A stretch of 64,000 nt of DNA from assembly GCA_015680685.1 (NCBI GenBank), contig MNCI01001077.1, forward strand, positions 501,627-565,626. Reading direction: 5' to 3'. The notes below the pieces were generated by a model. That model saw nothing but the letters and a program-made list of their open reading frames with translations. It was not told the origin of the DNA and searched no databases. The position numbers and the translations under genes are program-made. This stretch comes from Gnetum montanum. Taxonomy: Eukaryota; Plantae; Gnetophyta. Below, in pieces: positions 23,867 through 52,152 of this stretch. Positions within the stretch are counted from its first letter, which is position 1. Every line of letters begins with the position of its first letter.

Positions 23867-25462
23867 ATGGTTACATCAACCACAGCTATCGACACTACCA
23901 ACCTTCAGGATCCTTGGACCATACAAGCTACGCTTCCTAGGGTCAAGCTACCAACTAGCCCAGCACGACCACACTGCTGTCTCAAGTTGCAAAATAAGGA
24001 GCCTGAGGAACACGCTCAGCATAGAGAACACTACAATTTCCTCTGTGTTAAGATAGCAGTAAACCTGCCCATGTATCTACAAGAATTCAAGAAAAAATGA
24101 GAGTACAAGTTCATGTACTACAACAGGAAGGAATTTATTCCTTCACCTAACGTCACTGTCCCCCTAACGGACCAACAAAAGTGGATCCTAGATCAAATGT
24201 TGATGGCAAAGACATCGCCAAAACAACTAGAGGTGTTGTTCCATGATGAAACACTTCATGATGTGCAAGAAGATCTAGAATCTCACTCGGAAGGATGCAA
24301 TCATGCTGATTTCACTATGGCCCCTACCTCCATGACGTCCTGCGTAAATCTATTGTTCATGGTTACCACGCCCATGACATTATCCAATACCAACTGAGTC
24401 CCACATTCACCGCGCTTACATTTTCTTTCTCCGACTATCTTCCTAGGCGATGTTCTCTCACAAATCATTCCCCAGTAGGCACAATTACCTAATCCACCTC
24501 ACCGTACACCTACACCTGTGTCACTGCATGTACACATGATACCTATGTCATAATTCCCTACAATACCTACCTTCATCCCGAACCACATGACAGAGCCTGC
24601 CACTATAGGATGGTGGATTCCAAACATGCCACTCGTTGCGCATCCCATGCAAATGCCCCATCATCCCCATCATCAAAGCCAAGTCCCACAAGCGCTAAAC
24701 CCAGTTACAGGATCGTTGTCGATGCCCCCAGTTACACAAATAGCATATCAAATAGCGCAACCAATAGTGGTTGCCCCATCCGCACCAACTACTGGATGGT
24801 GTATGCCATAAGTAGCACCACTTGCATGGACCATCTCACTAGCACTGACTATCAACCAAGCTACCGCCTCCGTTGTGACACCCAGTTTGGCCCCTCCTGC
24901 TGTTCCACAAATGACCTCCTCATCTACAGGTCTGGACCAAGCCTTCCAGCTCATTTGGACCCTTACAGAATAGGTCAAGCATCTCAAGGTTGCTGTTCTG
25001 GCATGGTACAAGTCATGGATTTCTACCATGATGATCCTATTAGTCTAGCAGTCCCAGTCCTATCGTTCTCACCTGGGATGCCCCTTCTCCATTTCACAAA
25101 ATACAATGGGGAAGGTGATCCCAACATCCACCTTGTCACTTTTAGGTAAAAATCCTTATTGCTGCAACAATGGCTGCATAGTATAATCCATGTCTTTGCT
25201 ATGTCCTTAATGAAAAAAGCTCTAGACTGGTATCAAGCCCCTCCATGTTCTTTCATTTCAACTTTGGAAGAGCTGCTAACCTAGTTTGTGACTCGTTTCA
25301 AATACAACCTAAATCCAGAAGTCACGTTGGACCAGCTCATGGGAGTTAAGCAAGGCCCGCTTGAGTCGGTCCAAAAGTTCATACAGTGCTGGAGCACTAC
25401 CTTGAATGAAATCCGCGAACCCATTGCAGAAGCCCATCTACTGGAAATCGTCAAGGGAGCAG
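23867..25462 (+). pseudogene. gag: gag of element B, 5' part (split by element C)
   Basis: YNFLCVKI..EFIPSP N-terminus, DFYHDDPI..KYNGEGDP core, ends EAHLLEIVKGA at the LTR C junction. Confidence 0.85.
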
Positions 25463-26861
25463 TGAAACACCACAAAATTCTGAGCTTAGTACTTCTCCAA
25501 CAAGAATCGAGCTTGAGGGCCCCACAGATAGCTTCAAGCAGAGTCGGACTCAACAAGGAGCAGTTCCCTGGGACCCGCAGATGACCACGGCGACATCTGC
25601 TATCAGAAATGGCAACTTTGGAGCTCAAGATAGTTAGTCTTTATGAAGTGTGCATTCTCAGCATATGCACCTAGTGGATACGCCTAGCATACACACCCAG
25701 CATAAACGCCTCACATGAACACTCAACATGTATGACTGATGTATACGCCCAGTATTCCACCCTCGAAGATGGCAAGGAAACAACGCTGTAGAGCAAGACT
25801 TTGTATAGAGCATCAACTCACACAAATAGAGCAATCATCAGACACTGACATCATGCATTCTGAAGTTCATACGCTGAGCATGCACACCCTACACGCCCAG
25901 TGTATATGCCCAACGTATACGCCTGGCGTATACACCTAGCATGTACAAAGTGTACAACCAGTGTCGGATCAAGGTCAACCAAGCTGAACATCCATAGGTA
26001 GCATCTTCATGGCATCAGAATTCAAATTTGAAGGCCGAAAGATTTCTTTTGCTTTGATCAAGTTTGTACGCCCAGGTCATACGCCCAGCATGTATACACT
26101 GGCGTGCAATGGTATACGCTGGTGTACAGTGTGTATACCTTGGCGTGTAGCATGCTGTATACTTGTAAATTTCATTCTTTCGCACTCGGTCAACACACCA
26201 CTTGTCACCCGACCCAAGAATCTAGCACTCCACAACCAATCATCCCCTCTCAAAACCCGAGTCCCGCATTTACACTTGTATAAAAACCCCAATTTTTCAC
26301 TAGACCGGGGTTGGAAATTTTGATCAAAAATCCAGAGAAAAACAGAGAGACAGAGACGCTAAGAAACCAGAGCAAAAACCATGTACACTGGATCTCGACC
26401 CTACACATTGAGCATACAGCTTTTACACTATGCCTGTAGTTGAACCCAGCACATAATCATCCCTGCATTCACCGGGGCTATTCATCCGCCTTGTGTCAGA
26501 GTCACAACTATGTTAGATCGGTGCATTGTAACTTTCATTTTGCAATAATATTGCTACATTTCTTTGCTAAAATCTATTACATTTTTTCATTCATTATTAC
26601 ACGTTTACTGCTTACGCTCCTGTATGTTTACGTTATGCTCCATTTTACATTCGTTACGTAGTCTATGTATAACCCAGTGTACAGTATATCAGTGTACATT
26701 CGAGGAAATCCTTGCCTGATCCACGTGCAGACCACTCAAGGTACTCTACCTTCATTAATTCCATCTTTCCCTGAAGCGAAGGTAGCGTCCTCTATGCATG
26801 TCTATAGATCTCTAGGTTTCTGTTTCATTCCAGCCAGAAATCGACAATTTTGGACAGTACA
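25463..26861 (+). repeat. 5' LTR of element C
   Basis: tgaaacaccacaaaattc...ggacagtaca; direct repeat of 42603-43976; TATA tataaaaa at about 26279. Confidence 0.95.
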
Positions 26862-26984: not shown

Positions 26985-27480
26985 CTATCTACAGAATTCC
27001 CAGCATCTACGCTACTAAGTATACAACATCCTTGTCTACAGAATTCCCAGCATCTACGTTGCTGAGTATACGACATCCTTGTCTATAGAATTCCTAGCAT
27101 CTACGCTGCTGAGTATACGAAAACTCCGTCTACAGAACTCCCAATGTCTATGCTACTGAGTATACGCCGACTCTGTCTACACTGCTTAGTATACGTTGTA
27201 TGCTCTATGCTATAGACTCTATCTACGCTGCTCAGTATACACTATACGCTCTACACTATAGACTTTGTTTACGTTGCTGGGTATACACCATACGCTCTAT
27301 GCTATAAACTCTGTCTACACTGTACGCTGACTTTGTCAAAGCTATACATTGTAGACTCTATCTACGCTACTCAGTATACACTCTACGCTGCCCTGCCTAC
27401 ACGTTTTAACGTATACATGTGCGCTATCACTATACGCTGGTCATTGAAGCCTAGACACTGAGACCCGGTCTATACGCTGT
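26985..27480 (+). repeat. 5' UTR tandem array (47-bp unit x about 4, then degenerate TACGCT units)
   Basis: ctacagaattcccagcatctacgctgctgagtatacgacatccttgt recurs at a 47-bp period (26990, 27037...). Confidence 0.85.
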
Positions 27481-27562: not shown

Positions 27563-30500
27563 ATGAACACTGCGAACCCCAATGCTACAACCAAGCTCGT
27601 CACAGACATTGTAGGCACCATGGCCATTCAACAACCCATCGTACAACCCACAGTGGGGTCTCATCAGTCTCTTAGATTACAAGGGAGGAACCCATCATTT
27701 AATATCTAACTCAGGAGTAATACAATTTCATATGCGTAAAAATACAAGCCAACCTTGCTGTAGACCAAACGGAAATGGAAGTTAAGAGGCAATACGAACT
27801 CTTCTATAGGGGAGGACAAGAGTTCATCCCTTCCCCGTATGATATCATTCCTCTCCCAAAGCACTACTCTAAGCAGATCTCACAACTCCTCCTACAAAGG
27901 AGTCTATCTTTAGACCTATCTCTGACAAATCCTCAATTGGAAGAGGAAGATGACTTCGTAGCTCAATCCGAGCATGAAGATTCGTACCATACTCTTAGTC
28001 CACAGACCTATGTAAACCTGTTGTTTCATCTAGCCACAGGGGAAGTTACATCCCTCCAACCATTTAAAATCACCCAAGCACAAATACCTCAACAAGAATC
28101 ATCCACACTTATCCATATTCCACCTGTAATCAAGGTGCAACTCAACACACTCCCCCTTGCTATTCCCCTTGTTGCAACAATACCTCCATTCTTGCAAATA
28201 CAACCTCCTCAAATGACGTAGGAGCAACCTTCCCACCCCAAGTGATCAGGATGCCGCACATAATACTAGCTTCTACATCTGCTCATTACATACTATGGAT
28301 ACCAACCCAAGGAGCATCCTTTACAACTGTAACCCAATAAGTTCAGGGGAGTCCTACACAAAACATGACTGGGCAATGGACAATGATTGGTGCTCAATCA
28401 CATCAACCCCCCCATTATAACATACACCCTCACACAATTCTACCAGCTAACATCCCTCAAGGACAACCACGATAATAGCAACCCCTTACCTACAACATGC
28501 CACTCTTAGCACCACCTGCTACAAATATCCCGTAAGTACAACCTCCGACCACACAACTTTTTGCCTTCTAGCCCACTATCCAACAATCAAATATGTATAC
28601 TATACAACATCCCCAACCTGCTATCTCCCCTAGTGCCCAAGACTGGGCTGATGCCAAAAAGCTAATGTAGAAGCTAACTGATGAGGTCAAATGCCTCAAA
28701 ACAGCCCCCAACGGAGAGCTGAAGGTAGTGGACTTCTATCACGATGATCCTATCAGCAGTTTGGTTCCACCCCTAATATTACCCAAGGGTGTATCCTTAC
28801 CCACGCTAACTAAATACAATGGGGAGATAGACCCCAAAGCTTACCTTATAATGTTTAGACTAGAGTGCGCGCTACTTCAGGCATGGCCACATGCCATTCT
28901 ACGAGTGTTCCCCATGTCCCTTGCCGGGAGAGCACTTGATTGGTATCGGGCCTTACCACAAAACTCAATATCTTCTCTGAAAGATTTGTTACACCAATTC
29001 GTCACTAGGTTCAAGTATAACTTGAAGCCTGAAGCAACACTTGATAGCCTCATACAGGTCAAGCAAGCACCCCTTGAACCTGTCCAAAAATTCATCCAAT
29101 GGTGGAGTGCTGCTCTCAATGAACTCCATGAACTGATCCCAGAGACATATATCCTCACCATCCTAAAAGGGGCTATCAACAATTTTGTCAAATCCAAACT
29201 ATATTATCTCAATGCACGTACTCTGAGTCAAGCGTTTGTACAAATCAAAAACATAGAGGAGGCAGCACAAAACAGCCATGATCTTGCATATTCAGCTTTT
29301 AAGAATCAACATAGTAAGAAAGATAAAGAGAAGGTTAAAACAACTATAGTGGCATTAGAAGAAACACAACAAGAGAATGTGGGACAATAGAGAAAATCGC
29401 TTGTTTCCCCTACTGATTATGCTAAACTCGCTCCTATGACAGTACCTGAAGCATCTGCATCACAAAACCCAACACTAGGTCATATGAGAAACTTCGAGAG
29501 GAAGGACCCCTCTCAATCTACGCCATTGCCCATGAAGCCATTGCAGCTATTTAACCAACTCTTGAAGGCTAGATTGATGAAACATAAACAATTTTCCCCT
29601 GTAGAGATCTAAAGGCATGATCGATTCTGCCAACTGGTTTAGAACCTAAGCCTGGCAATGCCAGACGAGCCCTCGATACCAAAATGCTTTACAATGCATC
29701 ATTTTTATGATTATCATCAATTTAATGAGCATGGCATGGATTATTTTTTTCACCCTAAAATAAGATATCCAATGAATGATCAACGGAGGTTAGATCACTT
29801 TTGATGAAGCCAACCCAGTCCACCCACAAAACCAGGCCATGGGTGTATATAAAGATCCTTTAAATAATAAAGAGGCACCATATGTAATTAACACCATCTA
29901 CCTTGATAATGAATCGAAAACACTCAAGATTAACACTTTCCATTCCGATCATGAGCAGCAAACACCTAATAAACCATTTGTAGTGCGTATTTCTCCCACT
30001 GTACAAACACCTATGCCTCAACCATCATACTCCCCATAGAAACCTTATGTCATCTGAGTACCCCCCACCATAGAAACTTCTAACACACCAACATGCAAAA
30101 AATCATACGCGGTGCACGTACCTCCTACTGCTACTACTGCAAACACTCAAACACCTCCTATTTAGCCTGCTACCTACGTAGTCCGAGTGCCACCTATGGT
30201 CGCAACAGCGGAGGTACAACCTCTAGCTAGGCCAACTCCGTACATCGTTAGGACACCCGAATGTCCTGGTGAACACAAGTCCTCCATTTCACAAACATAG
30301 AATAAACCAATCCCCTATGTCATCAAAATGCCTAGCCAGCCTGACACTCAACCGCATGCAACTATCCAACTGCAACCCCGCCCTTATCCATATGTTACAT
30401 AGGTTCCAAAGCAACCTGAGGTTTTGAAACCAACTATACCCCCACGCCACACACGAGAACGCCTAGCAGACAAGCTTACACGCGAACGCTTGGAGAAGGT

Positions 30501-31759
30501 GCCTCAATGGCTAGCCGTAGGACCTCCTAAGCCTACCCCACTAAATGCAATACCCATGACACCACCTAACAATAAATGAAACACAGGCTATAAGGGTGAA
30601 TCATCCGGAAAACATCATACGCCCAAGTCAATGATTCCTGGTAAAGATGACAAACCAACTATGCATGAAATAAAACTGTTGGGCCCGATGGACCAAATCA
30701 TTGCCGACAAACATACGCCCAAAAGTAGAGATCTAGCAATAGCTCTAATGCAAGTCACACAGGAGCCTAAACAAAAAAAAGCTTCACTGAGCTTATACGA
30801 CTTGGTGTTAACATATCAAACCCATCACGAAGCTCTAGTGCGCATGTTAACATCTATCCCCAGTGAGCGAAGACTTGCCTCCAAATGAACCTTCAATTCA
30901 TGCGGTAATGCACTCACCTCAAGGGTCAACCCCTAAGCCATTAGGTTTCCACAATGACAACATCAAAGTAGATGAGAAAATGGGAGAGGTAACAACCACG
31001 CCTATGTTCATAACAATACAAATAAATCAATTCAAGATACATAGGGTCCATGTAGATGATGGAGCCGCTACAAATGTAGTACCCTATCCCATCGTCAAAC
31101 AATTGGGGCTTACGGAGCTAATTAGACCAACCGTCACCACGTGTTTGAAATCGTTCAGCGGATCGCACATGATAGTCAAAGGCACCGTGACTTTAGACTT
31201 TATAGCAGGGGATTAGTTCCCCACATCCAACAACTTTGTGGTAATCGATGAAACGCTAGGGTTCAACCTAATATTGGGAAGGCCCTAGTTAGCCCAACTA
31301 AAAGTAGTCTCTTCCCTTATGCACCAAGAGATTCACTTGCGTTATGAAGGTGGTGAAATCGTTATACATAGGGAGACTGCTAAATCTACCATCTCATCGT
31401 ATACAGACACAGATCAAGGCTCAGACGTTAAGCTCGAAGAGCCTAAACAAGATGATACAAATGAACAACAACCAGTAGGCGATAATCTCTTAGACACAAA
31501 GGAAAATTTACCCAAAATAGAAATACCTAGGCCTGAAGTTGTACATACACAGCCTCACTTAGAAACTACATCCGACACAGAAACCACAATACATGTAGAA
31601 GCGCTAGAAAGCACCAACGCGGGAACTATTCCATCAGATGTCCCTTGGGCTGAATTACCATTCAATATGATCAGTGAAGGAGATGCTGAATATAGAATCA
31701 TACCCATTAACGCTACTCCTAATGTTAAAATGAGAAAAATCAAAAAACTATTAAACTAA
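27563..31759 (+). pseudogene. gag: gag-protease of element C (in-frame stops and frameshifts)
   Basis: ORFs 27775, 28728 (Gag core), 30863 (aspartic protease VHVDDGAATNV...) and LGFNLILGRP.LAQL at about 31260. Confidence 0.9.
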
Positions 31760-31779: not shown

Positions 31780-31973
31780 AACGATGTTAAACTATCATGT
31801 CCGTAACGACATAAAACTAGCCATGATTAGAAATGGTCGGTCTACCAAGAAATCAACCTTTGTCACATGAAACTTTCCTTGCTTACGCTTGGCCCGAAAT
31901 GGCCTTAAACTAGTGCACATGGCCCGAAATGGCCTTAAACTAGTACACATGGCCTGAAATGGCCTTAAACTAG
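31780..31973 (+). repeat. 30-bp tandem array tggcccgaaatggccttaaactagtgcaca x3 plus degenerate AAACTA units
   Basis: Directly visible just after the gag-PR stop. Confidence 0.9.
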
Positions 31974-32347
31974 ATCATCTACCTACATTTTGTTTTTCTC
32001 CCGAATTCCAATTTATTGTTCGAATTTACGCTTACATTGTCGTGTTGTTAGTAACAATCTTTGCAATTAGCTTTCGCTTATAATTACATTCCTACTTATA
32101 ATTACATTCATGCACTACACTTAAACTGCAAAAAGAAACCAAAACGTTTTATATTGCCATGTCGTTTTTACATTTAAACTCAAAATACACAACAAAAAAA
32201 TATATAGAAATATATATACATGTAGTGATATACAGTTAGATAAGTACAAGAGTTAACTGATTCTATTCATCTGCTCAATACAACTCAAAAACATTCAATT
32301 TATGACTCACGTAAAAAATGTGAGTCAGAATAATTTCAAAGCAAAAA

Positions 32348-35300
32348 CTAAACATCAGGGACAGGAGGGTCATCCCCTTTAGACTCGCCAGCATCATGGG
32401 TCCCTACTCCATTGGGGCCAGCTTCTTGAACATCATCATCACCTCGACCCTATAAAATGTAAAAGAAACAATCAACACAAGAACAAAAAAGAAAACTCCC
32501 AAACATGACTCAATAAATGAATTTCATGGAAACAAAATGCTTACCAAAGGGGACCCCCCTAAACTGAATTCCAGTCGACGGAGAATTTCCTCTTCTGAGA
32601 CACTAGCCCAATCAGTCCCATCAAGGCCTAGATCGACATTTTCCAAGGCCTTCCCCTTGTCAATAGCCAACCATGTAGGAAGTTTCAAGGGGAATTCACC
32701 CATAGAGACCTCCCAAGAAGCAGTCGTGATTACCCTAGTAGGCGATTCCATCTCAATAGTTGTATTCTGAGCAAAGGTATCAAATGCAGAGCATAGACTT
32801 AGACCCTCTACAAACATTTCAAGCTGACGCTTTTCTATGGATACTTCCTTCAATGATTTCTTGTAATGTTGCTTGTGGTTCTTCTCATCTTGACCCCACT
32901 TACGCACCTTGGAAGCAAAAGCCTTCCAATCTTGGCACTTGAGGTTCAGTAGATCTACTTGGGCCTTACACTCTACTAGTTTCTGGGTCAGTGACATGTG
33001 GTGATTAAGTAGGTTCCAATATCTAGTATAAGTGATCTCAGAGGTTTGTCAAGAATGATCACCTATCAGTCCAGCTGAGGCAAACTCATACCGAGCCTTG
33101 TGATCATCACATTCAACTGAAAACTCAGAAACTTCTTTTTCCTTTGCTTGGATTTGCAACCATAACTATTCGATGGAATGCCTACAGGTCCACAGTGATT
33201 TGGCGTTATGTACAAGACCTTCCACCACCTCATCATAGACCATCCTGGGTATCTATTTAACTTCTGGGGGTAGTTTAGGCAAACTTTCAATGCTAATGGT
33301 CTTAGATGGATCCCACTTCAGCTTGGCACCTACGCACACAAAAGGAATGGACATTAAACATTAGATGACAAAAAAGGGATGTGAAACTCGAACGCTGTAG
33401 AAGGATCGAAACATTTGTACCTATCTCAGTGTGGGATTCCTAAATATGTTCAACAACCTCGTCGACGATACCGATCACAAAATCCATTTTACTTGGCATC
33501 TTTGTCCAAGAAAATGGTCTACAAGTACAAGGTGGACCAGCCTCAGGGGGCATTTCAGGGGGAGCCACCTTCATAGGTACTTCCAACCACATCGTAGGAA
33601 TTATCCTACCTTCATCTAGAAGGGATAAAAACATAAAAGTAAAACACCATAGAAACAATGATTCACCAAGCAACACAATAAAAAAAAAGGGAACATACCA
33701 TCTTCTCTAATCCCTTCCGGGTTTGGAGGTTCACCGAGGTCCAATCCTCCCTTAAGGAAGCTACTGAACATTTCATCAACACCACCTTGGTCATTGACCA
33801 GTTTTGTCTCCGTGGTATCTTCTGCTAGCTCCTTTGTCCCTTTTGCCTGATCCTTTCCGACCTCTTCCTTCTCAATTATTAAGTCTATCGTAGCTTCCTC
33901 CTCCTTGATGATGGTCTTTAACTCCTGTCTCCTCACTTCTCAAGTCAAGTATGAAGGCATTAGTTGCATGTAAGTAGTCAAAATGAAAATTATGAATAAG
34001 ATGAAAAGGATAATGCAATAAGTGCACCAAGCTTACTTACCTTGAATAGGCATTTTGAACCATATTCACTTCACCCTTGGCTCTTCCACATTTGAGGCCA
34101 CCTCTGTTGAGCATTCATGCTTCGAGAGCTTCAACTTGGCTTTCCCGATGGTTTCCTTGATGACACGTTCAGTTCTCTTTGTAGTATAGGGCACATCATC
34201 TAGTTCCAACCCCATACTATCAAGTGTATGTATTGAAGTACCAGATGACCCTCCTTTCGTGATGGACACAGATTCATGAATCCCCTCAGGTGCATCTTGG
34301 GACTCAGTTGTCTCAAACAAATGATTAATTCACATGTGAGATAATTGAGTACAATCCCGTAGAACATATTTGTTGGCCGCGTGAAATACTAAAAACTCGG
34401 CCAAGCAATGAAGATAGCTAGCAAAGAATGAAAATGTAAAATGGGACTGCGCCTCAATGTTTGAACCTAATCGCACTATCTCCTTATGAAGGCCTAGCAA
34501 CAAAAATTGAACCCAATTATAATGCATCCCAGTTTCTAAAATGGTTTTCATGATGTGCACAGCTTCCACCCCAAGACTCCTCACCTAGGACAGGGATTTA
34601 GGAAACACCCATGCCAAAAACAGGGGATACAATTCATTAACTTCCTTAACCTTTGATGTCCCCTATATAGGGAATCCCTTGGAGCCCTTGACAATGCCCA
34701 ACCAGTCCTCTAGCTCATGCACCATATGAAGCTCTTTCTGTGCCCTGTCCAAAACCACATTTACACCATCTACCAGTACACTGAATAGGTTTGAAAAGAA
34801 CTCGGTTGATAGATGGAAAAATATTTTGACACCCTTAATACAGGTGCTGTAGTAGGAGACAGACTTGTCAAATGTGTCCACAATCCTGATCATTTTAGTT
34901 ATGGACACATTAGGGCTCGGGGTTGTAAATAACTCCATAAGGCTGGCATCACCTAAACAACAAACAATAGATGGCGGGGCATTGGTGCACAACCATTTCT
35001 ATGCCTTCTTGATCTCCCCAAACTTCATTGACAGGGTACTCTCAATTCATCCTGTCTTAATAGGGTCTCCATCGGGAGGGACATCAACTATAAACACAAT
35101 TTGAAACCATCACATCAGTATGACCACTAGCAACCGAACAAACATACTAAGGCATCTAGGAAATATCATCACTAACCTTCAGTTGTGGACTTCGATGTAC
35201 TAGAACCCAAGTTAGCATCATGAGGAACAACTGGTCCATTGCATGACCAATCTCCATGCAGCCACCCACGAGCTGTGCACTGTGCAAACGCCCTGGAAAA

Positions 35301-36632
35301 ACATTTATGGAAATGGACAATGTCATCCTTCATCTAGGCTAATATAGCTCCGCTGAGGGTGGGATCCACCATAAAGGTCTCTAGACCAGTATGAACCAGG
35401 GCAAGCCCATCATCATTGACGCATGTCCCATCTTGGTTAACTTGTGGCCTGGAAAAGAATGGTCGTCAAAATAGGGGCAAACACTAAACGACAAAAATAG
35501 AAACGACAAACTAAACGATCTTACCTCTCTACCCGGTACACCATGCTAGGAGGGTTCTGAAATAACGTGTGCACAGATGTAGCCAGAAATAAGGTGTTAT
35601 TAAGATAGTCAGGCCCTCATGGCAATAGGTCCCACATGCATGCTAACGGGCGAGTAGATATGGGCCTACTAGAGGGACCATCCTCGATCACAAGCAGTCC
35701 CTCGTCAATGTCCACCATGAAGACCATGACGCCATACAAAGATCCAGGAAACATGGCTTCAAGTACGCTCTGCGCCACTTGTTTTCTCAGGTGTGATAAG
35801 ACCACCACCTTAAATCTGTCTAGGATGAAGGCAACGAATTCATAGGCCCCTTCCCTGAACCATACCCCATTGTTGTCAATAGTCATATTAGGGGTAGTTT
35901 CATCAATCTTAAGCAGCCCAAACCATGCTAGTACTCTAACTAGCTCAACTACCAAGAGGAAAGGCTCAGTGTCCCTGCAAGTAACTAGAATGGCATGATA
36001 AATCAACTATATACGAAAATGAGATGGAAAAACAAACTTCATGTTGAAGGCTAATACTTCAAAAAATTAAAAAACCATTTACGCTCAGCGTATACACTGC
36101 TTGAAAAGTGAAAACCATTTATGCTCAGTGTATACTCTGTGGAAATAATCTGTGGTATACGCTGTGAAAACAATCTACACTATACACTATGAAAACTGTT
36201 TCCACTCAGTGTATATGCTATGAAAACTGTCAACATACACGCTGTGAAAACCATCTACACTGTATGCTGTGGAAATTATCTACACTGTAAGCTGCAAAAA
36301 CCTTATACGCTCAGTGTACAGACCTTGTACGCTATGGAAATTGTCTATGCTTTAAACTGTGGAAACCTTCTACGCTCAGTGTATAGGCCCTTTACGCTAC
36401 CAAAACTATCTACGCTGTCAAGACTGTCTACGCTAGATAACAAGTATAGATGAAAAATAGTTAATAGAGATAGGATTAGAGCCTACCTGTGTGATGATCC
36501 AGGAAACAATGAAACCCTTGGTCTACGCAAACACTACAACATGGCCTCACTTTCTTTCGCAAAATTCAGGTCAGGCCCCTTCCTCCCCTGGCCTTCTACC
36601 TCCTTGCCCTTGCCCATTTCGGTGTCCTGCAT
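32348..36632 (-). pseudogene. Antisense multi-exon gene of element C (about 1,100 aa): FCP1/NIF-like pseudo-phosphatase, PMD/Transposase_32-like domain, coiled coil; several deamination stops
   Basis: GT-AG introns at 35449-35524, 35088-35176, 33616-33698, 33330-33420 and 32450-32544 join the minus ORFs in frame. Further donors lie at 36486 and 34040 (phase unresolved). A homolog is at 52390-56000. Confidence 0.85.
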
Positions 36633-36699
36633 GCTGAAATTAATGGGTTTACAATAGGGTCCGAACCCGAACGTCGAACTGAATCCTGCACGCTGAGTT

Positions 36700-37010
36700 T
36701 GAGCCTCTACGCTCACGCTCACACTGAGTTTGAGCCTCTACGCTCACGCTCACGCTCACGCTGATTTTGAGCCTCTACGCTCATTCTTACATTGAATTTG
36801 AGCCTCTACGCTCACGCTTACGCTGAAGTTCGAGCCTCTACGCTCTACGTTTATGCTGGGGTTTGAGTTTCTACGCTTACGCTGGGGTTTGTTCCGGTTT
36901 GCTTCAAGTTTACTGTGCCTCTAACAACTGACAGCCTTACGCTATATATAGTACCGCACCGACCCTGCCGCCGCCGCCTTCATCGCCGCTGCCGCCGCCG
37001 CCGCCGCCTT
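36700..37010 (-). promoter_or_regulatory. Putative promoter/5' UTR of the antisense gene
   Basis: TATATATA at 36943-36950, upstream (GCC)n tract 36966-37008, downstream tandem gagcctctacgctcacgct units; CpG-rich. Confidence 0.6.
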
Positions 37011-37214: not shown

Positions 37215-37370
37215 GCTCGGTATGGCCTTTAACTACCATGATGGCCCGGTATGACCTTAAACTGCCACACATGGCCTAGTAAGGCCTTAAACTGTCATAT
37301 TCGGCTCACATTTGGCCCAGTAAGGCCTTAAACTGCCACACACGGCCCGGTAAGGCCTTAAACGGCCATG
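37215..37370 (+). repeat. About 30-bp GGCCTTAAAC tandem array upstream of RT
   Basis: Five units of the type tggcccggtaaggccttaaactgccacaca, same family as 31890-31973. Confidence 0.9.
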
Positions 37371-37426: not shown

Positions 37427-40400
37427 ATGAACATGAAACAACAGCTATCAGCTCATTCTGCCCTTTGTTTATTGGCAGGAGCAAGCCTGATGGATTGTCA
37501 GCGTTTATCCACACCCTTGATCATCAATGGACCATATGGAAACATCACAATAGAAATCGACATAAATTCCATCAACTTAGGTACATCAATGGATGACATA
37601 ATCATAGCCTCAATGCAACAAATGCTAGATAGCTACAAAGGTATCACAAAATATTTCGACATAGAAGCCGATAGCATCACTGAAGACCCGTTGACTGAAA
37701 CCCCCATCACTATGCCTGATGATGAAATTAAAATATTAAGATTAAGTACACTATTGCAACCTCAACTGGAAAAATACATAGAAGATGTGCTTCGAGACAA
37801 CATAAAAGCATTCGCTTGATCTTACATTGACATGTCTGGGTTAGATCCTCAAATCGTCTAGCACAATATTATCCTTGATCCAAAATTGAGGCCATTAAAA
37901 CAAAAGGCATGAAAGGTTAAACCTGAGGTAGCATTGACAGTTCACAATGAGATCACCAAACCTTATCAAGTAGGTTTTATTTGGGATGTCGATTATGCCG
38001 ATTGGGTATCCAACATGGTCATTGTCCCAAAAAGAATGGAAGCATTCGCTTATGCATAGACTTCTAGGATCTCAATGTTGCAACCATAAAAGATGATTTT
38101 CCCCTACCCAACATCGATCAACTTGTTGACTCGACTACTGGGCATGCCCTATTATCTTTTATGGATGGCTTCTCAGGATACAACCAGATATGCATTAACC
38201 TAGAGCATCAGCTCTGTACTACTTTATGACACCATGGGAAACCTTTTGTTACACAATGATGCCCTTCGGTCTCAAGAACGTTGGGGCCACGTATCAAAGG
38301 GTAATGACATTCATTTTTAGCGATTACATTCTGCACTCGCTCAATGACTATGTGGATGATATCATGGTTAAATCAAAGACATCAAAACAACACGTACAAG
38401 ATCTTAACCTAGTACTAAAGTGTTATTTAAAATATGAGCTGATACTTAACCCAAAGAAATATGTCTTCAGAGTCAAAACAGGAAAAATGCTTGGATTCAT
38501 AGCCTCAGAAGTAGGGATATGAGCAGACCTTGATAAAGTTAAGGCCATAACAAACTTAAAAACACCTAGCAACCTTACCGAACTTCGAGGTCTACATGGT
38601 AGATTGCAGTTCATCAGGCGTTTCATAGAAAAACTAACGGACAAGTTGAAACCTATGAACCACTTGCTACATAAGAACGTCCATTTTGAATGGACTCCAC
38701 AGTGCCAGAAAGCATTTGACAATATTAAAACAACACTTGTTCAACTACCTACGGTTTATCCACCTCAAAATGATAAACCATTTTACATCTACCTTGCCAC
38801 TTCAAACTCGTCAATTGCATCCATGCTTTGCCAAAAACAAGATGATGGAACCAAAGTCCCTGTCTACTACTTAAGCCATGCATTAGTAGCCCATGAGAGG
38901 AAGTATCACGAGGTGGAGAGGTTATGTCTAGCCCTAGTATTTTCCTTAAAAAATGGTGACATTACCTCTTCCATAACCAAGTCAATATAATCTGCAAGGA
39001 TAATGTGCTAAGAGCCATCCCAGGAAACATTTATGAGTCAAGTAGAATAGCCCGTTGGAAAGCCATGATAGCTGAGTTTGACCTACACTACATAACGCAA
39101 TCATTAGTTAAGGGTCAAGCAATAGTGAATCAAATGACTGTGTCAACAACGCATGATCAAGAAACGATAGAGCTAGAGTTCCTTGATGAAAATGTAAGTG
39201 CAATAGACATAGTACCAGATGACTACGATGCCTTTTTGAACTTTGATGGAGCATCCACCTCTCGAGGGGGAAGTTCTTCCGCCATCATCACCTATCCCTC
39301 TGGGGAGATCCACCCCTTTTCTTATCATTTCGAATTTCATTGTACCAACAACATAGCAAAGTACGAAGGTCTCCTTAGAGGTCTCATGGCAGCACTAGCT
39401 TCAGACATCACACAACTTGTGGTCAGGGGAGACTCACAACTGGTTCTGAACCAAGTCATAAATATTTATACATGCAAAGTGCAACATTTACAACCATACT
39501 GTGACTTAGCCAAACACTTAATGAAGAAATTCGAAAACACGAATGTGCAACATGTCTTTAGAAATGATAATACCATCGTAGACGTACTAGCCACGCTAGC
39601 GCTAAACATATTGCATGACATGTTTCATATGTTGCCAAGCTCCATAATTAGTTGTGCTAAACTTGTAACCAATACTCTCGATATATTACCAATTGCATCC
39701 GTTAGTACAACAGATGCAGTAGAATGGTATGACGACATAAAAGAGTACCTTCTACATGGTGAAACATCACGACATCTAAGGAATGCACAAAAAGACGCAG
39801 TACGAAAACGTTCTCGACAATATACACTGGTAGGGGACACATTGTGCCATCGATCCTACGAAGGCATACTGCTAACATGCGTTAGTAACGCTAATGCCCA
39901 AACCATCGTTGAGCAAGTACACGATGGACTATGCGGAGGACATATAGCACCTAAAGAAATGGCAACAAAAATAAGACGCTTAGGCTATTATTGGCCACAT
40001 ATGGAGTATGATTGTCTCTACAAGGCTAAAATGTGTAGTGTCTGTCAAAAACATAGTAATCTGATCCATGTCCCACCAAATGAGTTGCATATAGCATAAA
40101 TCACATGGTCCTTTCAAAAGTGGGGGTTGGACCTTATCGGACCAATAACACCCTCATCTTCCGTAGGGCATAGCTTCATCATAACCGTGACAGAGTATTT
40201 CACGAAGTGGGTAGAAGTTGTTTCCATTTGAAAAACCACATCCAAACACGTATGTAACTTCATTCTTGAAAACATTGTGACCCGTTTTGGCATCCCCATG
40301 ACCATCATCACCGATAACGGGCCACAATTCAGCAGTGCCAAAACCAAAACATTCTGTGAAAGTCTAGGCATCAAGAACCCAATTTCATCCCCTTACTACC

Positions 40401-40963
40401 CTCAAAGTAATGTGCAAGCTGAGGCCACAAATAAAACCATCATTACAGTACTTAAAAAGATGCTTACCCAAAGCAAGAGAAGATGGCATGAGCAGCTGGT
40501 ATACGCACAGTGGGCTTATCGTACTATGCATCGGACTTCAACAGGTAAAATGCCATATAGTCTTGTTTATGGTTCAGAAGCTATTTTACCCTTGGAATTA
40601 TAGGTACATTCTTTAAGGATCACACTTTTCGGACTCCTCGATGAAAGGAAAAATAATGACCTATGCATCATTGACTTGGACTTGGTGGAGGAAGAACCCA
40701 TACATGCACTCGATCAGATTGAATGGTACCAAAAACAACAACGACAACACCATCGGCATGATGTTCATAAGTGCCCTATCAAGGAAGGTGACCTTGTACT
40801 TAAGGTCGTTTGGGAACACCTAGACAAATTCTCAGCCAACTAGGAAGGGCCCTACTTGGTCACCAAAGCATACGACAATGGAGCATTCAATTTGGCTGAT
40901 ATGGAAGAGAATGAGCTTGCAAATCTGAACAATCACTTGTTCTTGAAACCATTCCACATTTGA
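37427..40963 (+). pseudogene. pol: pol of element C: RT, RNase H, archaeal-type RNase H (aRH), integrase
   Basis: RT: RLCIDF.DLN, LSFMDGFSGYNQI, MPFGLKN, YVDD. RH: PVYYLSHAL..E. aRH: FDGAS..CTNNIAKYEGL..GDSQLV. INT: HDGLCGGH..CSVCQKH, GLDLIGP, TDNGPQF, QAEATNK, EGPY. Several stops and frameshifts. Confidence 0.95.
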
Positions 40964-40980
40964 GTACAGGCTTAGGTACG

Positions 40981-41350
40981 TGCTCGTCTTGGAATCATGA
41001 TGGTAAACTGATACCACAGCTCATCCTGGAATCATGATGGTAAACTGATACCATAGCTCGTCCTGGAATGATGACGGCAAACTGATACCACAGCTCGTCC
41101 TGGAATCATGATGGTAAACTGATACCACAGCTCGTCCTAGAATCACGATGGTAAACTGATACCACAACTCATCCTGGAATCACGATGGTAAACTAATACC
41201 ACAGCTTGTCCTGGAATCAGGTTTGTAAACTGATACCATAGCTTGTTATAGAATCACGACGGAAAACTGATACCACATCTTGTCCTGGAATCATGATGGT
41301 AAACTGATACCACATCTCATCCTATAATCATGATGGTAAACTGATACCAC
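40981..41350 (+). repeat. 37-bp tandem array x10 in the 3' UTR of element C
   Basis: Unit agctcgtcctggaatcatgatggtaaactgataccac, head-to-tail, starting 18 nt after the integrase stop. Confidence 0.95.
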
Positions 41351-42586
41351 AGAATGTCCGCAAAGACAATAAACTAGCACCCATCCAGTACGACAGTAAA
41401 CTGCCATAGTTGCATTCACGAGAGTCCGCTAAGACTATAAACTGGTTTGCCTCTGCACGGTCCGCCAAGACTAGAAACTAGTAATGTACCATCCATCACA
41501 ATGCTAAACGGGAAATTTCCAATGGATCATGACATAAAAATAACCCATGATAGTCAGCTATGACTATAAAATGGTAATTTTCTCTCTGATACCTTGATCT
41601 ATGGCTGCAGCCCAACTTCATCAGAGCCGCTGCATTGCTCACCATTAGCTGATCCTACCAACGTTGCTGCCATTCATATACAGTGCCTGAAATGTCATTC
41701 GGTACCTTCATTTCATCAATAGCTATTTAAGTCTAAGCTTACTTACATACTCATGGTTTTCTTGTCTTCATGGAGTTGTGTTTGCAAGATGACACTTAGA
41801 GGTGTTTGTACAAGAATGCACTTCGTCATAAGCAACAAGGTGAGACATTGTTCACAGCACATGTGACAAGACTAATCAAGCCATATACTAGTACATCCCC
41901 CATTTCATATCCCACCTATCCCTCAACATCTCCTACTTGGTTACATCCCAAACAGACCCAGTACAGCCTAAAACATCGAACATACTATTGCACACTATGC
42001 CACTCTTAGGTGATTGCAACCCACAACATGTCATTTGAGCATGTGAAAAAGATAAAAAAAAACAAAAAAAAACTTTGTTCCTTCCCACATAAAACACAAA
42101 ATGGGATGGTAGTTGCCTCGAAAGCAAATGCTCGTGTCTAAAACAATCAAGAAACATCCCATTGCATAGCTTTGGCTTTCGGCCAATAGGTTCCCCCTAA
42201 ATAATAAACAAGGGCCTTGTTCCTCCAAAGAATGCAACACATCATTACATGGCATTGGTTTTGCCAACAAGTCCTCTTGAACACTAAGCAAGAGTCTTGT
42301 ACCACCAAAGGACGTACATATCATGATTTGATCCCAAGAAGATAAGCATGGCCCGAACACATACCTGGACATCCTCTTCATCACGTCATGAGCCCTTCAT
42401 TGGTTACCAATCCCTATAGTTTCCATTTCCCTATCTAATACAAATTTCACTTTCCCAATCCTATATACTACTGAACATGGTACGATGACATCTAACTAGG
42501 TGGCAAAGGACAATGTCTCTATCAAGTTGCTTGTGATGTTTTGCACTTCTTTATTGATGCTTCTCAGGTCGATTCTTCCAAGCGTC

Positions 42587-42602: not shown

Positions 42603-43976
42603 TGAAACACCACAAAATTCTAAGCTTAGTACTTATCCAAAAAGAATCGAGCTTGAGGGCCCCACAGACAGCTTCAAGTAGAGTCGGACTCAACAAGGAG
42701 CAGTTCCCTGGGACCCGCAGATAACCATGACGACATCTGCTATCAAAAAATGGTAACTTCGGAGCTCAAGATACTTAGTCTTCACTATGTATGCATTATC
42801 AGCGTATGCGCCCAGCGTACACAACCTGCATACACGCCCAACATACATGCCTCACATGAACACTCAGCATGTATGACTGATGTATACGTTTGGTATACAA
42901 CCCCCAAAGATTGCAAGGAAACAGCGCTGCAAAGCAAGACTTTGTATAGAGCATCAACTCACATGAATAGAGCAATCATCAAACGCTGACATCATGCATT
43001 CTAAAGTTCATACGTTGAGCATGCACAACCTACATGCCCAACGTATATGCCTAGCATGTACAAAGTGTACAACTAGTGTCGGATCAAGGTCAACCGAGCT
43101 AAACATCCACAGGTAGCACCCTCATGGCATCCGAATTCAAATCTGAAGGCCAAAAGACTTCTTTTTCTTTGATCAAGTCTGTATGCCTAGGTAATATTCC
43201 TAGCATGTATACGCTAGCGTGCAACGGTATACGTTGGCGTACAGCGGTTTACGTTGGTGTGTAGCACGCTGTATACTTGTAAACTTTCATTCTTTTGCAC
43301 CCAGTCAACGCGCCACATGTCACCCGACCCGAGAATCCAGCACTCCACAGCCAATCATCCCCTCTAAAAACCTGAGTCCCATGTCTACACTTTTATAAAA
43401 ATCCCAATTTTTCACTAGACCGGGGTTGGCAATTTTGATAAAAAAACTAGAGAAAAACAGAGAAACAGAGATGCTGAGAAACCAGAGAAAAAACCTTGTA
43501 TTCTAGATCTCAACCCTACACACTGAGCATACAACTTTTACGCTATGCCTGTAGTTGAACCCAGCACACAATCATCCCTGCATCCACCGGGGCTATTCGT
43601 CCGCCTTGTGTCAGAGTCAAAACTACGTTAGACTGGTGCATTGTAACTTTCATTTTGTAATAATATTGTTACATTTCTTTGCTAAAATCTGTTATATTTT
43701 TTCATTCATTGTTACACGTTTACTGCTTACGCTTCTATAAATTTATGTTACGCTCTGTTTTACATTCGTTACGTCGTTTATATATAACCCAGCGTACAGT
43801 ATATCGGTGTACATTCGGGGAAATCCTTGCCTGATCCGCATGCCGACCACTCAAGGTACTCTACCTTTGTTAATTCCAACTTGCCCTCAAGTGAAGGTAG
43901 GATCTTCTATGCATGTCCAGAGATCTCCAGGTTTCTATTTCATTCCAGCTAGAAACCAACGATTTCGGACTGTACA
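42603..43976 (+). repeat. 3' LTR of element C
   Basis: Direct repeat of 25463-26861, ends ...ggactgtaca. Confidence 0.95.
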
Positions 43977-45941
43977 AGAGGTCAACGATTTTATCAAGTC
44001 TAAGCTGTATTACCTCGCTCGTCATTCCCTCAACAAAGCCTTTGCTCAGACTAAGAGCATCCATGATGCAGTGGAGGCTAGTAAAGATCCGGCATATATA
44101 GTCTACAAAATTCTCATAGCAAGGATAAGGATAAAGGCAAATCTGTGACAATGATAGTGGCGATGGTTGTTGAGGGGGCCAAGATGAAAAATAACAATAA
44201 TAAGAAAATGACTGCAGAGCCTGCCGAGCTGACAACTAGCTCAAATGGCATCCATCAAGAAGCACCTAACACCCCCAAAGTACCCCTGCAACTAAGGCCA
44301 AAATTTGAGCGTAAGGATAGCTCAAATTACGCAACTATACCTATGAAGCCTTCAGAAGATTTGAAGCAATTACTGGGAATCAGTCACATTCGACATAAGG
44401 TGATGTCCAAGGAGGCTCTGAAATTTCACAGGCACCATTGTGAGTTACTCAAGAACCCTTCCTTCACCCAGCCTAATGAACCACCTATTCACATGAACTT
44501 TAGGCTAGACTGATTCTATGACTCCCATCAATTATTTGGTCATGACATGGATTATTGTTGGGCGTTAAAAGATGACATTCAACATATGATTGATCAAGGT
44601 AACCTAATCTTAGACAGTAGTAGTCCATCTCACTTAGAAAAACAAGCCATGCATGTGTACCAAGGCCTGTTAAATGCAAATAACACAGGGTACACAATTA
44701 ACATGGTAGGAGTAGAGGGTGATAATCGGGCACAGTCGAAACAACCTTTCGTGTTGTGAATGCATCCTCGCTCTCCCCGAACAACAAATCCATCAACCTT
44801 GACAAGTGATGCTCCAAGGAAACCTTTTATCCTTGGAGCCCCTCTCTAGACAACTTCTTGACAACCTATTGTTGGTAAAGCCACGGCCCAGCCCACACCT
44901 ATGCCTAAGACTCCCTTTCTCATCAAGGTACCAAAACCATCAACCGCCCCTCCTGTGCAGGGGAAAACCTCCAAGTTAATCCCTCGATCCAAACTTAATA
45001 GAAAAGGAGGAGGAGGTATGACAATTGGTACAACCAAGGATCATATTACGCTGGGATTTTCCAAGCCTAAACCCCTCGCTTTTGTACCCTTGGCCCAATT
45101 TTCTAAAAATGGTGAAGTTATGCAAATGCAACCATCTCCTCCTAGCCAAAAGAAACATAGCCCTCAACCAAATGTCACTCCTCCCTAAGAAATTTATCTC
45201 CTAGGGTGAATGGAAAAGGAAAAGGATGACAAGCAGCCAGATCGTGGGTGGGATCTCTTCAACGCCTTTACGCAAGTCAAATAGGCTCTAAAACAAAACA
45301 ACACAACATTAAGCCTCTATGATTTACTCATGATGTCACAAAAACATCATGAGACTATGGTTCGTATGATCACATCCATACCCATGAACGAAAGCCTATC
45401 CATGGATGAAGAAGCGATTCATTCCATTATGCTTTCTCTCACGGTTGAGAAACTTGGGCCTTCCTTATTAGCCTTTCACAATGAATCCATTAAGGATGAC
45501 CCAAAAAAGGGTCAAGTAACAATGGCATCCATGTTCATCACCATTTGGGTTGGCCAACACTAAATTCAGAGTGTGCATGTGGATGATGGGACGACCACTA
45601 ATGTCATCCCATATCCCATAGTGAATAAGCTAGGTCTGATCGATCAGATCATTCCTACCACAACATCATGTTTAAAGTTGTTCAACAGGGCATGAGTGCA
45701 AGTCAAAGGCATAGTGCACATCAACTTTGTGGCATGGGAGCAGTTCCCCACGGACGCAACCTTTATTATCGTCGAAGAGATGCTTGGCTTCAACTTGATC
45801 TTGGGGAGGTCTTGGTTGGCTCAACTGAGGGCAGTTTCATCACCTATACATCACGAGATCCATTTGCCCTACATCGGAGGAGAAGTGGTTATCCACGGTG
45901 GTGAAATAACCCCTCAGGCTATTAATAACATAGAAACATAG
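43977..45941 (+). pseudogene. gag: gag-protease of element B, 3' part
   Basis: Resumes VNDFIKSKLYYLA; HQLFGHDMDYCWALK; protease VHVDDGTTTNV and GFNLILGRSWLAQL. Confidence 0.9.
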
Positions 45942-47733
45942 AAACATAAGTGTCAGTGCTATGCTCTCACTTCCCCTTGCTACACTCTAGAGTGTAGCTA
46001 GCATGGCTAGCATTGGACTTCAATCTTTGTAGAATTTGCCAAACTGTTAGGCTACAATCCAAAATGTAGATATCATAGTAATGCAAGATAGTCTCTAAAA
46101 GCTTTCAAAACCTAGCATCAGTCTTCATCTTAGCTTTGACATTCCTCTAGTAAGCATGAACAACAATTCATATTTCTTTTTCATCCCCCACCTATCCCCA
46201 AAATTGTACATATGCTTGATCCTACTCAAAAGTGGGGAGAACAAAGTCCTAGAGTTTCACCTCTAAATTGCACTATTTTACATTGTTTGTAGGTACATTG
46301 TAGTCTTTTCAACTTTGGCACATGCAGTCTTGGTAGTGTAGTCACAATCTGGTAATCTATTGGGGTCCATTGAAGTACAATGGAGCATAGCACTAGTTGC
46401 TCTAGTGGGAGCGTAGTTGGGTCTAGTGTAGCCACAACTACCCTCATGCCACATGGTGTCCAATCCATACTTTACATCAAAACTAATCCTATAAATAACC
46501 CAACATTTCATGTTTTAGGGGTTCGCAAAATTCAAACTTTGGTGGACATTTTTTGGTCAACAACTTTGCATTTGCATGGCATTTTCATCACTTGATAAGA
46601 CTAAAGAAAATTGAACACCCCTACACCCCAGAGTGCTCAACACCTTAGCAATAACTTTGCATCACTATAGCACACTGTAGCCTACAGGACACTATGTTAG
46701 CCAACCCAGTAGGTGCAAACATCATGGAAAATATCAATTTCCACAACTTGAACACCCTAGAGATTGTGACTACACTACCTACTATGCCTATCTATACATT
46801 GGATACCTCCTCACTTCTCCTTTGCAATTGCTATGCTTCTCCCGATTTAAGGTAGTACCATTCTTCCTCTTTATAACTCCTTTATATTTCCAAGCATTCT
46901 CTTTGTCATTTAGCATTGCATTGATATTTTTTTACTATTTTTCACATATTTGCACATTTGCACTATCATTCTCACACCAAGAGACCTTGTTACACTTGGG
47001 CTTAGTCAACCTTGGTACCACCAAAAGTACCATGCAAACCCATAGAACGCATTAATCAAAATACTCCGTAAGTACTATTTTGATAGAAAATACCATCTTA
47101 AGTGCTCTACCTCAAATTTTCCCCTCAAACAATGGCCCTTTAGATAGGATTAGGGTTATGATTGTATCACAGCTATAGATCCCTTGACATGATCATTCCA
47201 GCCACTAACATTTTTGATTACTATAGTTTTCTAATGCTAGAATGAGGGTCATGCAATTTTCTTCTACATTTAGTGGTAGTACCATGTGCTGTCTATACCT
47301 CTGTTACTAGTTTTCAGCTAGTGTAGACTTGACATCCTTGTGGACCTACGATAGTAGTAGCTGGATTCTAGGCTAGTGTACAAGTTCTCTACAAGTGAGT
47401 TGGTATAGATTGGACCTAGTTCTCAATTCCCCTAGAACCATGCTAGATGAAAGCCCAGGCATATCTTTGGCACTTAACCAAAACTTTCGATGCTTGGGAG
47501 AGCGTAACTAGCTCTCAGCAATAGAGCATAGTTCTCTCCAACATAGCGAGCATGCCACCAAGGTTAGTCGCTTTTCTGTAGCATTTTTAGAGTTATCCAT
47601 TTTTTGGTGAATTTCACACTTGGCCATTTTTTCAAAATTTTTCAACATTTTTGTACTTAGTCATTTTCTTAGCATTTTCTATACTTAGCAATTTTTTTCA
47701 ACATTGTAACTTTTGCACTTTTTGTATAGCATC

Positions 47734-50700: not shown

Positions 50701-51450
50701 TTCTCCTACACCATAGGAATTGGGTTCAACATGCTCTTAGCATTATAGGACAAGGTGATCAAGGTTGACCCTGAAAAGGGTCAACTTGTCACTGTGCCAA
50801 TGTTCATAACAATGTATATAGGGCAATGCAAGATTCATAGTGTGCATGTTGACAACAAGGTATCAACTAATGTCATCCCATTCCCATTCATTGATAAGTT
50901 TGGTCTTGCTAGCCAAATCAAACCTACAAAGACAAAGTGCATGAAGTCCTTCAATGGGTCACATGTTGTCATAAGGGGAATGGTCATGATAGCTTTCATG
51001 GCAAGGGAGCAATTTCCCACAACAACTAAATTCATTATCATCGAGGAGATGCCCAGGTTCAACCTGATCTTAGGAAGGCCTTTCCTAGCCTAATTACAAA
51101 TTTTCTCTTCACCCATCCACCAAGAGATCCACCTTTAGGATGAAGGTGAAGAAGTGATCATACATGGTGACAATGTAGCCCCTTCAACCATCAACAATGT
51201 TGACAAAAAATAAGGGTTAGAGTTACAGTTCCTTGATGACATGCTTCTCATAAAGAATGAGGGTTAACCTTATCATGTAGACCTTCCTAAGTAACAAAAA
51301 TATGTTGACAACATTCCTAGGAAAGCTCTATCGGTAGAATTTCCCTTTAGCATCATGGATGAAGGTCTAGGTGAATATTTCCTTATACTACCCTAGCCCT
51401 ATGCATCCCCAACCAACATTAAGTTAAGAAGCAACTACATGACTAAGGTA
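47734..51450 (+). pseudogene. gag: gag-protease of element D
   Basis: YNFLCMKI..GRECLPA N-terminus; DFYQDNLI..KYNSEGNP; protease VHVDNKVSTNV..FNLILGRPFLA (ORF 50755..51093). Confidence 0.85.
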
Positions 51451-51687
51451 ACCCCTTAGTTCAACATGTGCTAGGTGCCTATTTGCCTCTAATCTCTACA
51501 TGCCTCATTTTCCTTTTATTTGTGTTGTTACACTTTGTATGGTTGCTGGTGTTTTACATCATTTATTTTATTATGAATTCATTCCTTTTGTTTATGCATC
51601 TTCATTTAGTTTTCTTATGCATTAAAAAACAATAAAATACATAAAGATCATAAAATATAAAATTTTTTAAAAAATACATACAACCCA

Positions 51688-52152
51688 CCATGGCCTAAAA
51701 TTGGCCACCTTCCTTGCAATGTCATGGCTTGAAAAGGCCTTAAACTAACATAGAGCCCATCATGGCCTAAAACTAGTCACCTTCCTTGCATTGTCATGGT
51801 CCAATAAGACCTTAAACTAGCATACAGTCCACCATGGCCTAAAACTAGCCACCTTCCTTGCATCATCATGGCTTGAAAATTCCTTAAACTAGCAGAAAGC
51901 CTACCATGGTCTAAAATTTGCCGCCTTCCTTGCATCATTATGGCCCAAAAAATCCTTAAACTAGCATATGGTCAACTACAACCTAAAATTGGCAACCCTT
52001 TTACTTTCATCGCAATGGATTACCATAGCCTAAAATTGGCATCACATTTTCTTCTTTTATTTATGGCCTTAAATAACCTTAAACTAGCAATCGTTATGGC
52101 CTGAAATGACCTAAAACTAGTACTGGCCCTTCTACCATGGCCTTAAACTGGC
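51688..52152 (+). repeat. GGCCTAAAACT/GGCCTTAAACT tandem array (about 61-bp dimeric unit) after the protease of D
   Basis: Repeated catggcctaaaactagccaccttccttgca + tcatggc..aaaa..ccttaaactagcata. Confidence 0.9.

Follow-up and report, generated by a model that had tools for sequence, protein, structure and literature searches.

How can a gene interrupted by seven introns be housed in an element that multiplies by way of RNA? Long terminal repeat (LTR) retrotransposons replicate via RNA, so they are expected to be nearly intron-free. The question is raised by a 64,000-nt stretch of the Gnetum montanum genome (assembly GCA_015680685.1, contig MNCI01001077.1, positions 501,627 to 565,626 of the forward strand), called the window below and numbered from its first nucleotide, which is crowded over its whole length with related plant LTR retrotransposons. 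In one of these, designated element C, the end of the protease (PR) at 31759 and the start of the reverse transcriptase (RT) open reading frame (ORF) at 37427 are separated by 5,668 nt, in line with the gap of about 5.7 kb noted in a preliminary description of the locus. We propose, with a probability of about 0.75, that this interval of a Tat-clade, Ogre-like element holds an 8-exon accessory gene owned by the element lineage and lying antisense to gag-pol; minus-strand transcripts of the gene would be spliced by the host, and its protein is guessed to have a non-catalytic role.

The predicted gene comprises 8 exons (3,237 nt, ~1,079 codons) and 7 GT-AG introns on the minus strand of the interval. 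Its parts are given here in the direction of the putative transcription, with the basis of each assignment in parentheses.

36950-36943, minus strand: TATA box of the antisense gene, TATATATA (sequence).
36487-36632, minus strand: exon 1, model only, from ATG 36632, with one in-frame TAG (phase 2 fits the acceptor at 35975).
35975-36486, minus strand: intron 1, 512 nt, GT-AG, rich in TACGCT-type repeats (splice sites).
35525-35974, minus strand: exon 2, probable NIF/FCP1-like HAD-fold domain without the catalytic aspartates (sub-cut-off Pfam NIF match, PDB chain 1rku, Atlas neighbours).
35449-35524, minus strand: intron 2, 76 nt, GT-AG, phase 2 (donor matched in copy 2 by codon and phase).
35177-35448, minus strand: exon 3 (frame; weak ungapped copy 2 match in the expected frame).
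35088-35176, minus strand: intron 3, 89 nt, GT-AG, phase 1 (splice sites).
34041-35087, minus strand: exon 4, 349 codons, with the highest conservation between the two copies (frame, copy 2 match).
33939-34040, minus strand: intron 4, 102 nt, GTAAGT...AG, phase 1 (acceptor chosen preserves the frame).
33699-33938, minus strand: exon 5, acidic and lysine-rich (frame).
33616-33698, minus strand: intron 5, 83 nt, GT-AG, 58% T, phase 1 (splice sites, T-rich island).
33421-33615, minus strand: exon 6 (frame).
33330-33420, minus strand: intron 6, 91 nt, GT-AG, phase 1 (splice sites, T-rich island).
32545-33329, minus strand: exon 7, whose last 168 codons start with a long helix (frame, copy 2 match, AlphaFold2).
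32450-32544, minus strand: intron 7, 95 nt, GT-AG, 55% T, phase 0 (splice sites, T-rich island).
32348-32449, minus strand: exon 8 with the TAG stop at 32350-32348 (sequence, frame).

Introns 2, 3, 5, 6 and 7 had been put forward in the preliminary description, and each of them does start with GT, end with AG and carry a T-rich tract before the AG (43–58% T against 30% in the region). The donors at 36486 and 34040, the TATA box and the TAG stop that it listed are all present as well, and, as it proposed, phases 2, 1, 1, 1 and 0 join a single frame without a shift. Its estimate of about 1,100 codons over 8 exons is refined to ~1,079 by the exon 2 start at 35974 and by intron 4 at 33939-34040. 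The base composition follows the same boundaries: the T content is 27% in the exons, 42–58% in each of the six short introns (48% overall) and 30% in the whole region. Eight T-rich islands are found on the minus strand, six of which are the six short introns, the other two being a Phe/Leu-rich coding stretch and the 3' end, which is A/T-rich.

Stop codons are distributed in a similar way. In the best frame of the successive stretches between introns they number 1, 1, 6, 2, 1, 3 and 1, against 3–30 in the other two frames, which corresponds to a stop frequency of ~1% in the coding frame and ~8% in the others, with the phase kept over all junctions. The 12 internal in-frame stops comprise 7 TAG, 5 TGA and no TAA, so that the earlier remark that they are of the TAG/TGA type holds for all 12; this spectrum agrees, as the preliminary description had proposed, with decay by C-to-T changes in CAG, CGA and TGG codons of a methylated repeat. 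Judged by these 12 stops and by the 86% identity of the LTRs, the copy of the gene in element C is a dead pseudogene. At its 5' end, position 35974 (acceptor ttacttgcag/g) is the more likely start of exon 2 by its sequence, which shows a branch-like tract before the acceptor, and by its phase, which agrees with ATG 36632 of exon 1. Immediately upstream of the TATA box there is a (GCC)14 microsatellite (36967-37008).

Such a frame goes beyond what chance would produce because a second element of the window, element D, has the same exons in the same order.

52584-55992, minus strand: copy 2 of the antisense gene, carried by element D and more decayed than copy 1 (collinear protein-level matches, same intron positions).

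The two copies can be compared only as proteins. A blastn search of the element C interval against the rest of the window gave no DNA similarity, and tblastx gave nine collinear minus-strand blocks between 32626-35889 and 52656-55901, the best of which scores 75 bits (frames of the opposite strand reach ~30). When the exons of copy 1 were aligned to copy 2 one by one with tblastn (stops replaced by X), an identity of 28–45% was obtained across most of the model; exon 3 is weakly conserved, with an ungapped alignment in the expected frame. At codon positions 1, 2 and 3 the antisense gene has mismatch rates of 0.46, 0.33 and 0.67 (426 codons in blocks chosen by amino-acid similarity, p = 4e-12), and those of gag and PR of the same two elements are 0.36, 0.24 and 0.63.

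The splice sites are shared as well. Donor positions agree to the codon between the copies at five junctions, and phase agrees at both of the two junctions where it is comparable. The intron 2 donor lies after the second base of a homologous codon in both copies, the intron 1 acceptor falls at the same codon position and phase (that of copy 2 matching the acceptor at 35975), and exon 4 begins with TTGAT in both. Copy 2 has donors of the GTATGT, GTTAGT and GTAAG types at the matching sites of introns 3, 5, 6 and 7, and the offset between the copies stays within 20,008–20,047, hence the intron lengths are similar. A collinear chain of this kind and a third-position bias are what a gene under purifying selection leaves behind. 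Occupying the same antisense site after the protease in two elements, the predicted gene is, by this comparison, real and part of the element lineage. At one homologous codon both copies have a stop (TAG at 35001-34999, TAA at 55009-55007, between ...KKA/KGA and K/HWLC), which is probably a parallel C-to-T change at a Gln codon, the alternative being a shared feature.

Element D (45947-59335) has LTRs at 45947 and 58533 that are unlike the LTR of element C, and contains a leader, gag, protease and the antisense gene. No RT, RNase H (RH) or integrase (INT) and no pol similarity were found in it; by its content it is a non-autonomous derivative that retains the accessory gene. Retention of the gene by non-autonomous elements suggests that the gene matters.

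What kind of element, then, carries the gene? The sense-strand parts of element C are as follows.

25463-26861, plus strand: 5' LTR of element C (TG...CA; 1.4 kb aligned with 42603-43976 at 86% identity).
28728-29390, plus strand: gag ORF of element C (Pfam Retrotrans_gag, E 6e-8).
30851-31759, plus strand: protease region and C-terminal tail of element C (VDDGAA motif at ~31090; stop 31757-31759).
37427-40603, plus strand: RT, RH, additional RNase H (aRH) and integrase of element C, split over several ORFs (Pfam RVT_1, RT_RNaseH_2, RVT_3, Integrase_H2C2, rve).
42603-43976, plus strand: 3' LTR of element C, pair of 25463-26861.

From the order gag, protease, interval and RT-RH-aRH-INT, element C is assigned to the Tat clade of Ty3/gypsy, the identity first suggested for it. 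It belongs there, on its domain order, because an extra RNase H (RVT_3, E 1.3e-18, in the ORF 39005-40099, after RT_RNaseH_2 and before Integrase_H2C2) lies between RH and INT, an arrangement by which Ogre and Retand, Tat lineages of angiosperms, are recognised (PMC6317226, PMC4408406). Among annotated proteins, the closest to its aRH-INT part show 32% identity (Punica), and the protease is 47–57% identical to the proteases of other elements within the window. Element C is old, and its sense ORFs are all fragmented. No plant mobile domain (PMD) was found in its ORFs between the 5' LTR and gag, and hence no 5' sense ORF1 with this domain; the ORFs in 40114-42384, from pol to the 3' LTR, gave no Pfam hits, including no Transposase_28 antisense ORF; and no TGG-type primer binding site is visible adjoining the 5' LTR, where Ogre has one complementary to tRNA-Arg.

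Several other observations concern the anatomy of the elements. Element C is inserted in the gag of an older related element (24997-25470), which continues past the 3' LTR of C (44559-45896) to its protease, where it is cut by the 5' LTR of element D (45947). Between integrase and 3' LTR, element C has 10 copies of a 37-bp tandem repeat (40982-41352), usual for Ogre and Retand elements. Upstream of gag, at least five elements of the window share a block of ~50 codons that is conserved as protein (27706-27867, 1471-1611 on the minus strand, 19685-19831, 24023-24166, 47884-48039 and 63414-63575); it has no Pfam match and may be a remnant of a 5' extra ORF.

The orientation of the gene offers an answer to how its introns could outlast retrotransposition. 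A TATA promoter belonging to the gene would drive its minus-strand transcription, and the predicted transcript would be spliced by the host spliceosome. In the plus-strand genomic RNA the same introns would read CT...AC and be invisible to the spliceosome; because they could not be spliced from this RNA they would never be removed, reverse transcription would then copy them faithfully in each round, and the gene would keep them. Shielding of the introns by antisense placement had been predicted in the preliminary description, and intron positions kept in two elements diverged past DNA alignment are as this prediction has it. By analogy with Ogre, the whole 5.7 kb may also be spliced from some sense transcripts to make Pol: a sense acceptor of good quality is present at 37477-37478, and a convincing sense-strand donor for such a giant protease–RT intron is not found in the decayed copy of element C.

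The protein can be described in part. Searches were run with single exon pieces and not with the joined spliced protein. From the N-terminus, the predicted layout is a NIF-like HAD-fold domain, a middle part of ~440 residues, an acidic linker and, last, a long helix. The 129-residue piece of exon 2 matches Pfam NIF (PF03031) with E 0.0065 and 16.6 bits, under the gathering cut-off of 21.8, and, along the same motif II-like part, the HAD-family PDB chain 1rku with E 0.2; NIF accounts for 29 of the 30 named neighbour clusters that an Atlas feature search gave (best score 0.91, 178 shared features). In the position of DxDxT, after a hydrophobic strand, copy 1 has ELVRV and copy 2 has ELVGI. Exon 2 thus probably encodes an FCP1/SCP (NIF)-like HAD-fold domain, and it would be a dead phosphatase fold because of these two replacements. 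For the last 168 codons of exon 7 (piece 32545-33048) AlphaFold2 (AF2) models one helix over residues 2–84, with a predicted local distance difference test score (pLDDT) of 78–95 over the first 60; the modelled helix recalls the C-terminal coiled coil of other Tat extra-ORF proteins (PMC4408406). Exons 3–4 (~440 residues) gave no Pfam, PDB or Atlas match, and three pieces compared with PDB sequences gave either nothing or insignificant matches. PMD (PF10536) was not found by hmmscan to E 10 in the exon pieces of either copy, which are short, so that a very distant PMD may escape. An identity of the antisense protein as PMD or Transposase_28 is unsupported by Pfam in the exon pieces of both copies; a likeness to PMD motifs judged by eye is no more than a lead.

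Our guess is that the protein would serve the element as a non-catalytic binder or regulator, e.g. by binding a phosphoprotein such as the polymerase C-terminal domain (CTD). A more specific version, which we consider rather unlikely as a whole, takes the protease–RT interval, probably the element's own sense intron, as a nest for a multi-intron antisense gene, whose product, a dead protein of the FCP1/SCP-type CTD-phosphatase fold with a helical tail, would bind a silencing factor or the polymerase CTD in its phosphorylated form and thereby direct the element's transcription, its RNA processing or its escape from silencing. If this were true, no earlier case would be known of an intron-rich gene kept under selection as a stable component of an LTR retrotransposon, nor of a CTD-phosphatase-like factor borne by a transposon. 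A dead CTD-phosphatase-like protein would, if confirmed, be a concrete candidate for studying how giant plant retroelements handle host transcription and silencing.

Could the gene instead be a passenger or an intruder? Introns suggest capture from DNA or from unspliced RNA, the NIF-like domain is elsewhere a host protein domain, and LTR retrotransposons are known to transduce genes (PMC7264820), all of which would suit an intron-containing genomic fragment with such a domain, captured once in antisense and copied along with no use to the element. Transduced genes, however, are typically found in one or few copies (PMC7264820), and here the gene is kept by two families too diverged for DNA alignment, the coding-type substitution pattern is as strong as in gag and PR, the non-autonomous element D retains the gene, and no host-like homologue is detectable; passive carriage of a host gene is in our estimation distinctly unlikely. 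An ancient capture of a host gene that was later put to use is compatible with the lineage-owned accessory gene preferred here. Entry of another mobile element or DNA fragment into the interval of element C, a possibility already raised in the preliminary description, could draw on the arrays of one ~30-nt repeat that bound the cassette on both sides. The cassette has no terminal inverted repeats, no clear target-site duplication and, in Pfam, no transposase, RT or other mobile-element domain. Because element D, with a different LTR, has the same gene at the same position and terminal inverted repeats are lacking, a single secondary insertion can for practical purposes be excluded, and we find it scarcely credible. 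It is also very improbable that the unit is non-coding and acts as a regulatory antisense RNA, e.g. as a source of double-stranded RNA against the element, with the frame a relic or due to chance: regulatory antisense RNAs are known for retroelements (PMC7264820), but the third-position mismatch excess, the in-phase frame over seven junctions and the protein similarity that outlasts DNA similarity are marks of protein coding.

Several points weigh against a lineage-owned antisense gene as modelled here. Both copies in the window are broken, so neither shows a spliced frame that is open throughout; exon 1 and its start codon are uncertain, being model only. The choice of the codon-position blocks by amino-acid similarity inflates the substitution pattern somewhat. 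The NIF match is under the Pfam cut-off, and for the NIF-like piece the AF2 model is unusable (pLDDT 44). Searched with HMMER against 1.8 billion representative proteins, the same piece gave no homologue, just two spurious repeat matches; word-based protein searches with the C-terminal piece and with the best-conserved piece were blank, and no relatives were found in the metagenome contigs and viral contigs scanned.

In which respects does the arrangement differ from known systems? The closest is Ogre (Tat; pea, Medicago), which likewise has aRH between RH and INT, keeps the gag-PR and RT-RH-INT ORFs apart, and is large with tandem repeats 3' of pol. The Ogre interval between gag-PR and RT is non-coding and is a partly spliced sense intron (PMC6317226, PMC4408406); it averages 274 bp (PMC6317226) and is free of genes, whereas that of element C is ~20 times longer (5.7 kb) and holds the predicted antisense 8-exon gene. 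In 57% of Ogre elements there is a 5' sense extra ORF with PMD, unlike in element C, where none was found. In Retand, Grande (gene23) and RIRE2, also of the Tat clade, the accessory gene is antisense to gag-pol as here; the antisense gene of Grande has its own promoter, and in Tat lineages V and VI the antisense protein has a coiled coil at its end (PMC7264820, PMC11963269, PMC4408406). Their genes are, however, located between pol and the 3' LTR and are uninterrupted ORFs, mostly with Transposase_28 or PMD, whereas the gene of element C is located between PR and RT, has seven predicted introns and a NIF-like domain, with neither Transposase_28 nor PMD detected. Tat extra ORFs in general are either 5' and sense (Ogre, PMD) or 3' and antisense (gymnosperm TatIII, Retand, Grande and RIRE2; PMD or Transposase_28), and always uninterrupted (PMC4408406, PMC6317226, PMC7264820, PMC11963269). 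Giant Tat-clade elements with a fixed extra protein domain are represented by the Ogre-like elements of orchids with an AlkB ORF (PMC9289625), which, unlike the antisense gene, is sense, uninterrupted and has an active enzyme domain. With the FCP1/SCP/CPL phosphatases (Pfam NIF) the encoded protein shares the motif II-like stretch of exon 2, a REGA-EF segment followed by hydrophobic residues and Ser, and is called NIF by a protein language model; it differs in that DxDxT is replaced in both copies, the score is sub-cut-off and there is no HMMER homologue. Outside plants, HBZ is an antisense accessory gene in a reverse-transcribing element and has a spliced isoform. HBZ, of HTLV-1, has been cited as a comparison for antisense genes (PMC11963269), but it has one intron, a promoter in the 3' LTR and a bZIP protein and belongs to an animal virus, which makes it an analogy only.

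The preliminary description had held the arrangement to be new, and no account of it was met in the Tat extra-ORF literature searched (PMC4408406, PMC6317226, PMC7264820, PMC11963269): that literature contained no multi-exon antisense gene between protease and RT, and no NIF-like domain in a gypsy element. Tat accessory genes as such are already known; what would be new is one at a new site, with introns and a new domain. Extra-gene surveys took uninterrupted ORFs that lay on either side of gag-pol and were 250 codons or longer (PMC6317226), and a split antisense gene inside the polyprotein region would have been missed because only such ORFs, outside this region, were sought. If confirmed, the gene would mean that Tat elements have a third accessory-gene site, that a retroelement can carry a eukaryotic gene, complete and spliceable, for a long time as a passenger or a tool, and that antisense placement is the way to do so.

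Repeats flank the cassette and also occur within it. The two arrays at its ends are the following.

31890-31976, no strand assigned: tandem array of a ~30-nt unit with GGCCTTAAACT, on the protease side of the cassette (related array in element D at 51676-51999).
37218-37370, no strand assigned: second GGCCTTAAACT array, on the RT side of the cassette (repeat comparison).

In element D the related array likewise comes after the protease. The core of the ~30-nt unit, TAAGGCCTTA, is palindromic, so that in the sense RNA one end of the interval could pair with the other. Across the window, 24 occurrences of the heptamer CTACGCT are found (1.45 expected). Its clusters in element C are limited to the leader after the 5' LTR (27007-27389) and to the antisense 5' untranslated region and intron 1 (36370-36877), always on the plus strand, and it may be a shared regulatory or RNA signal.

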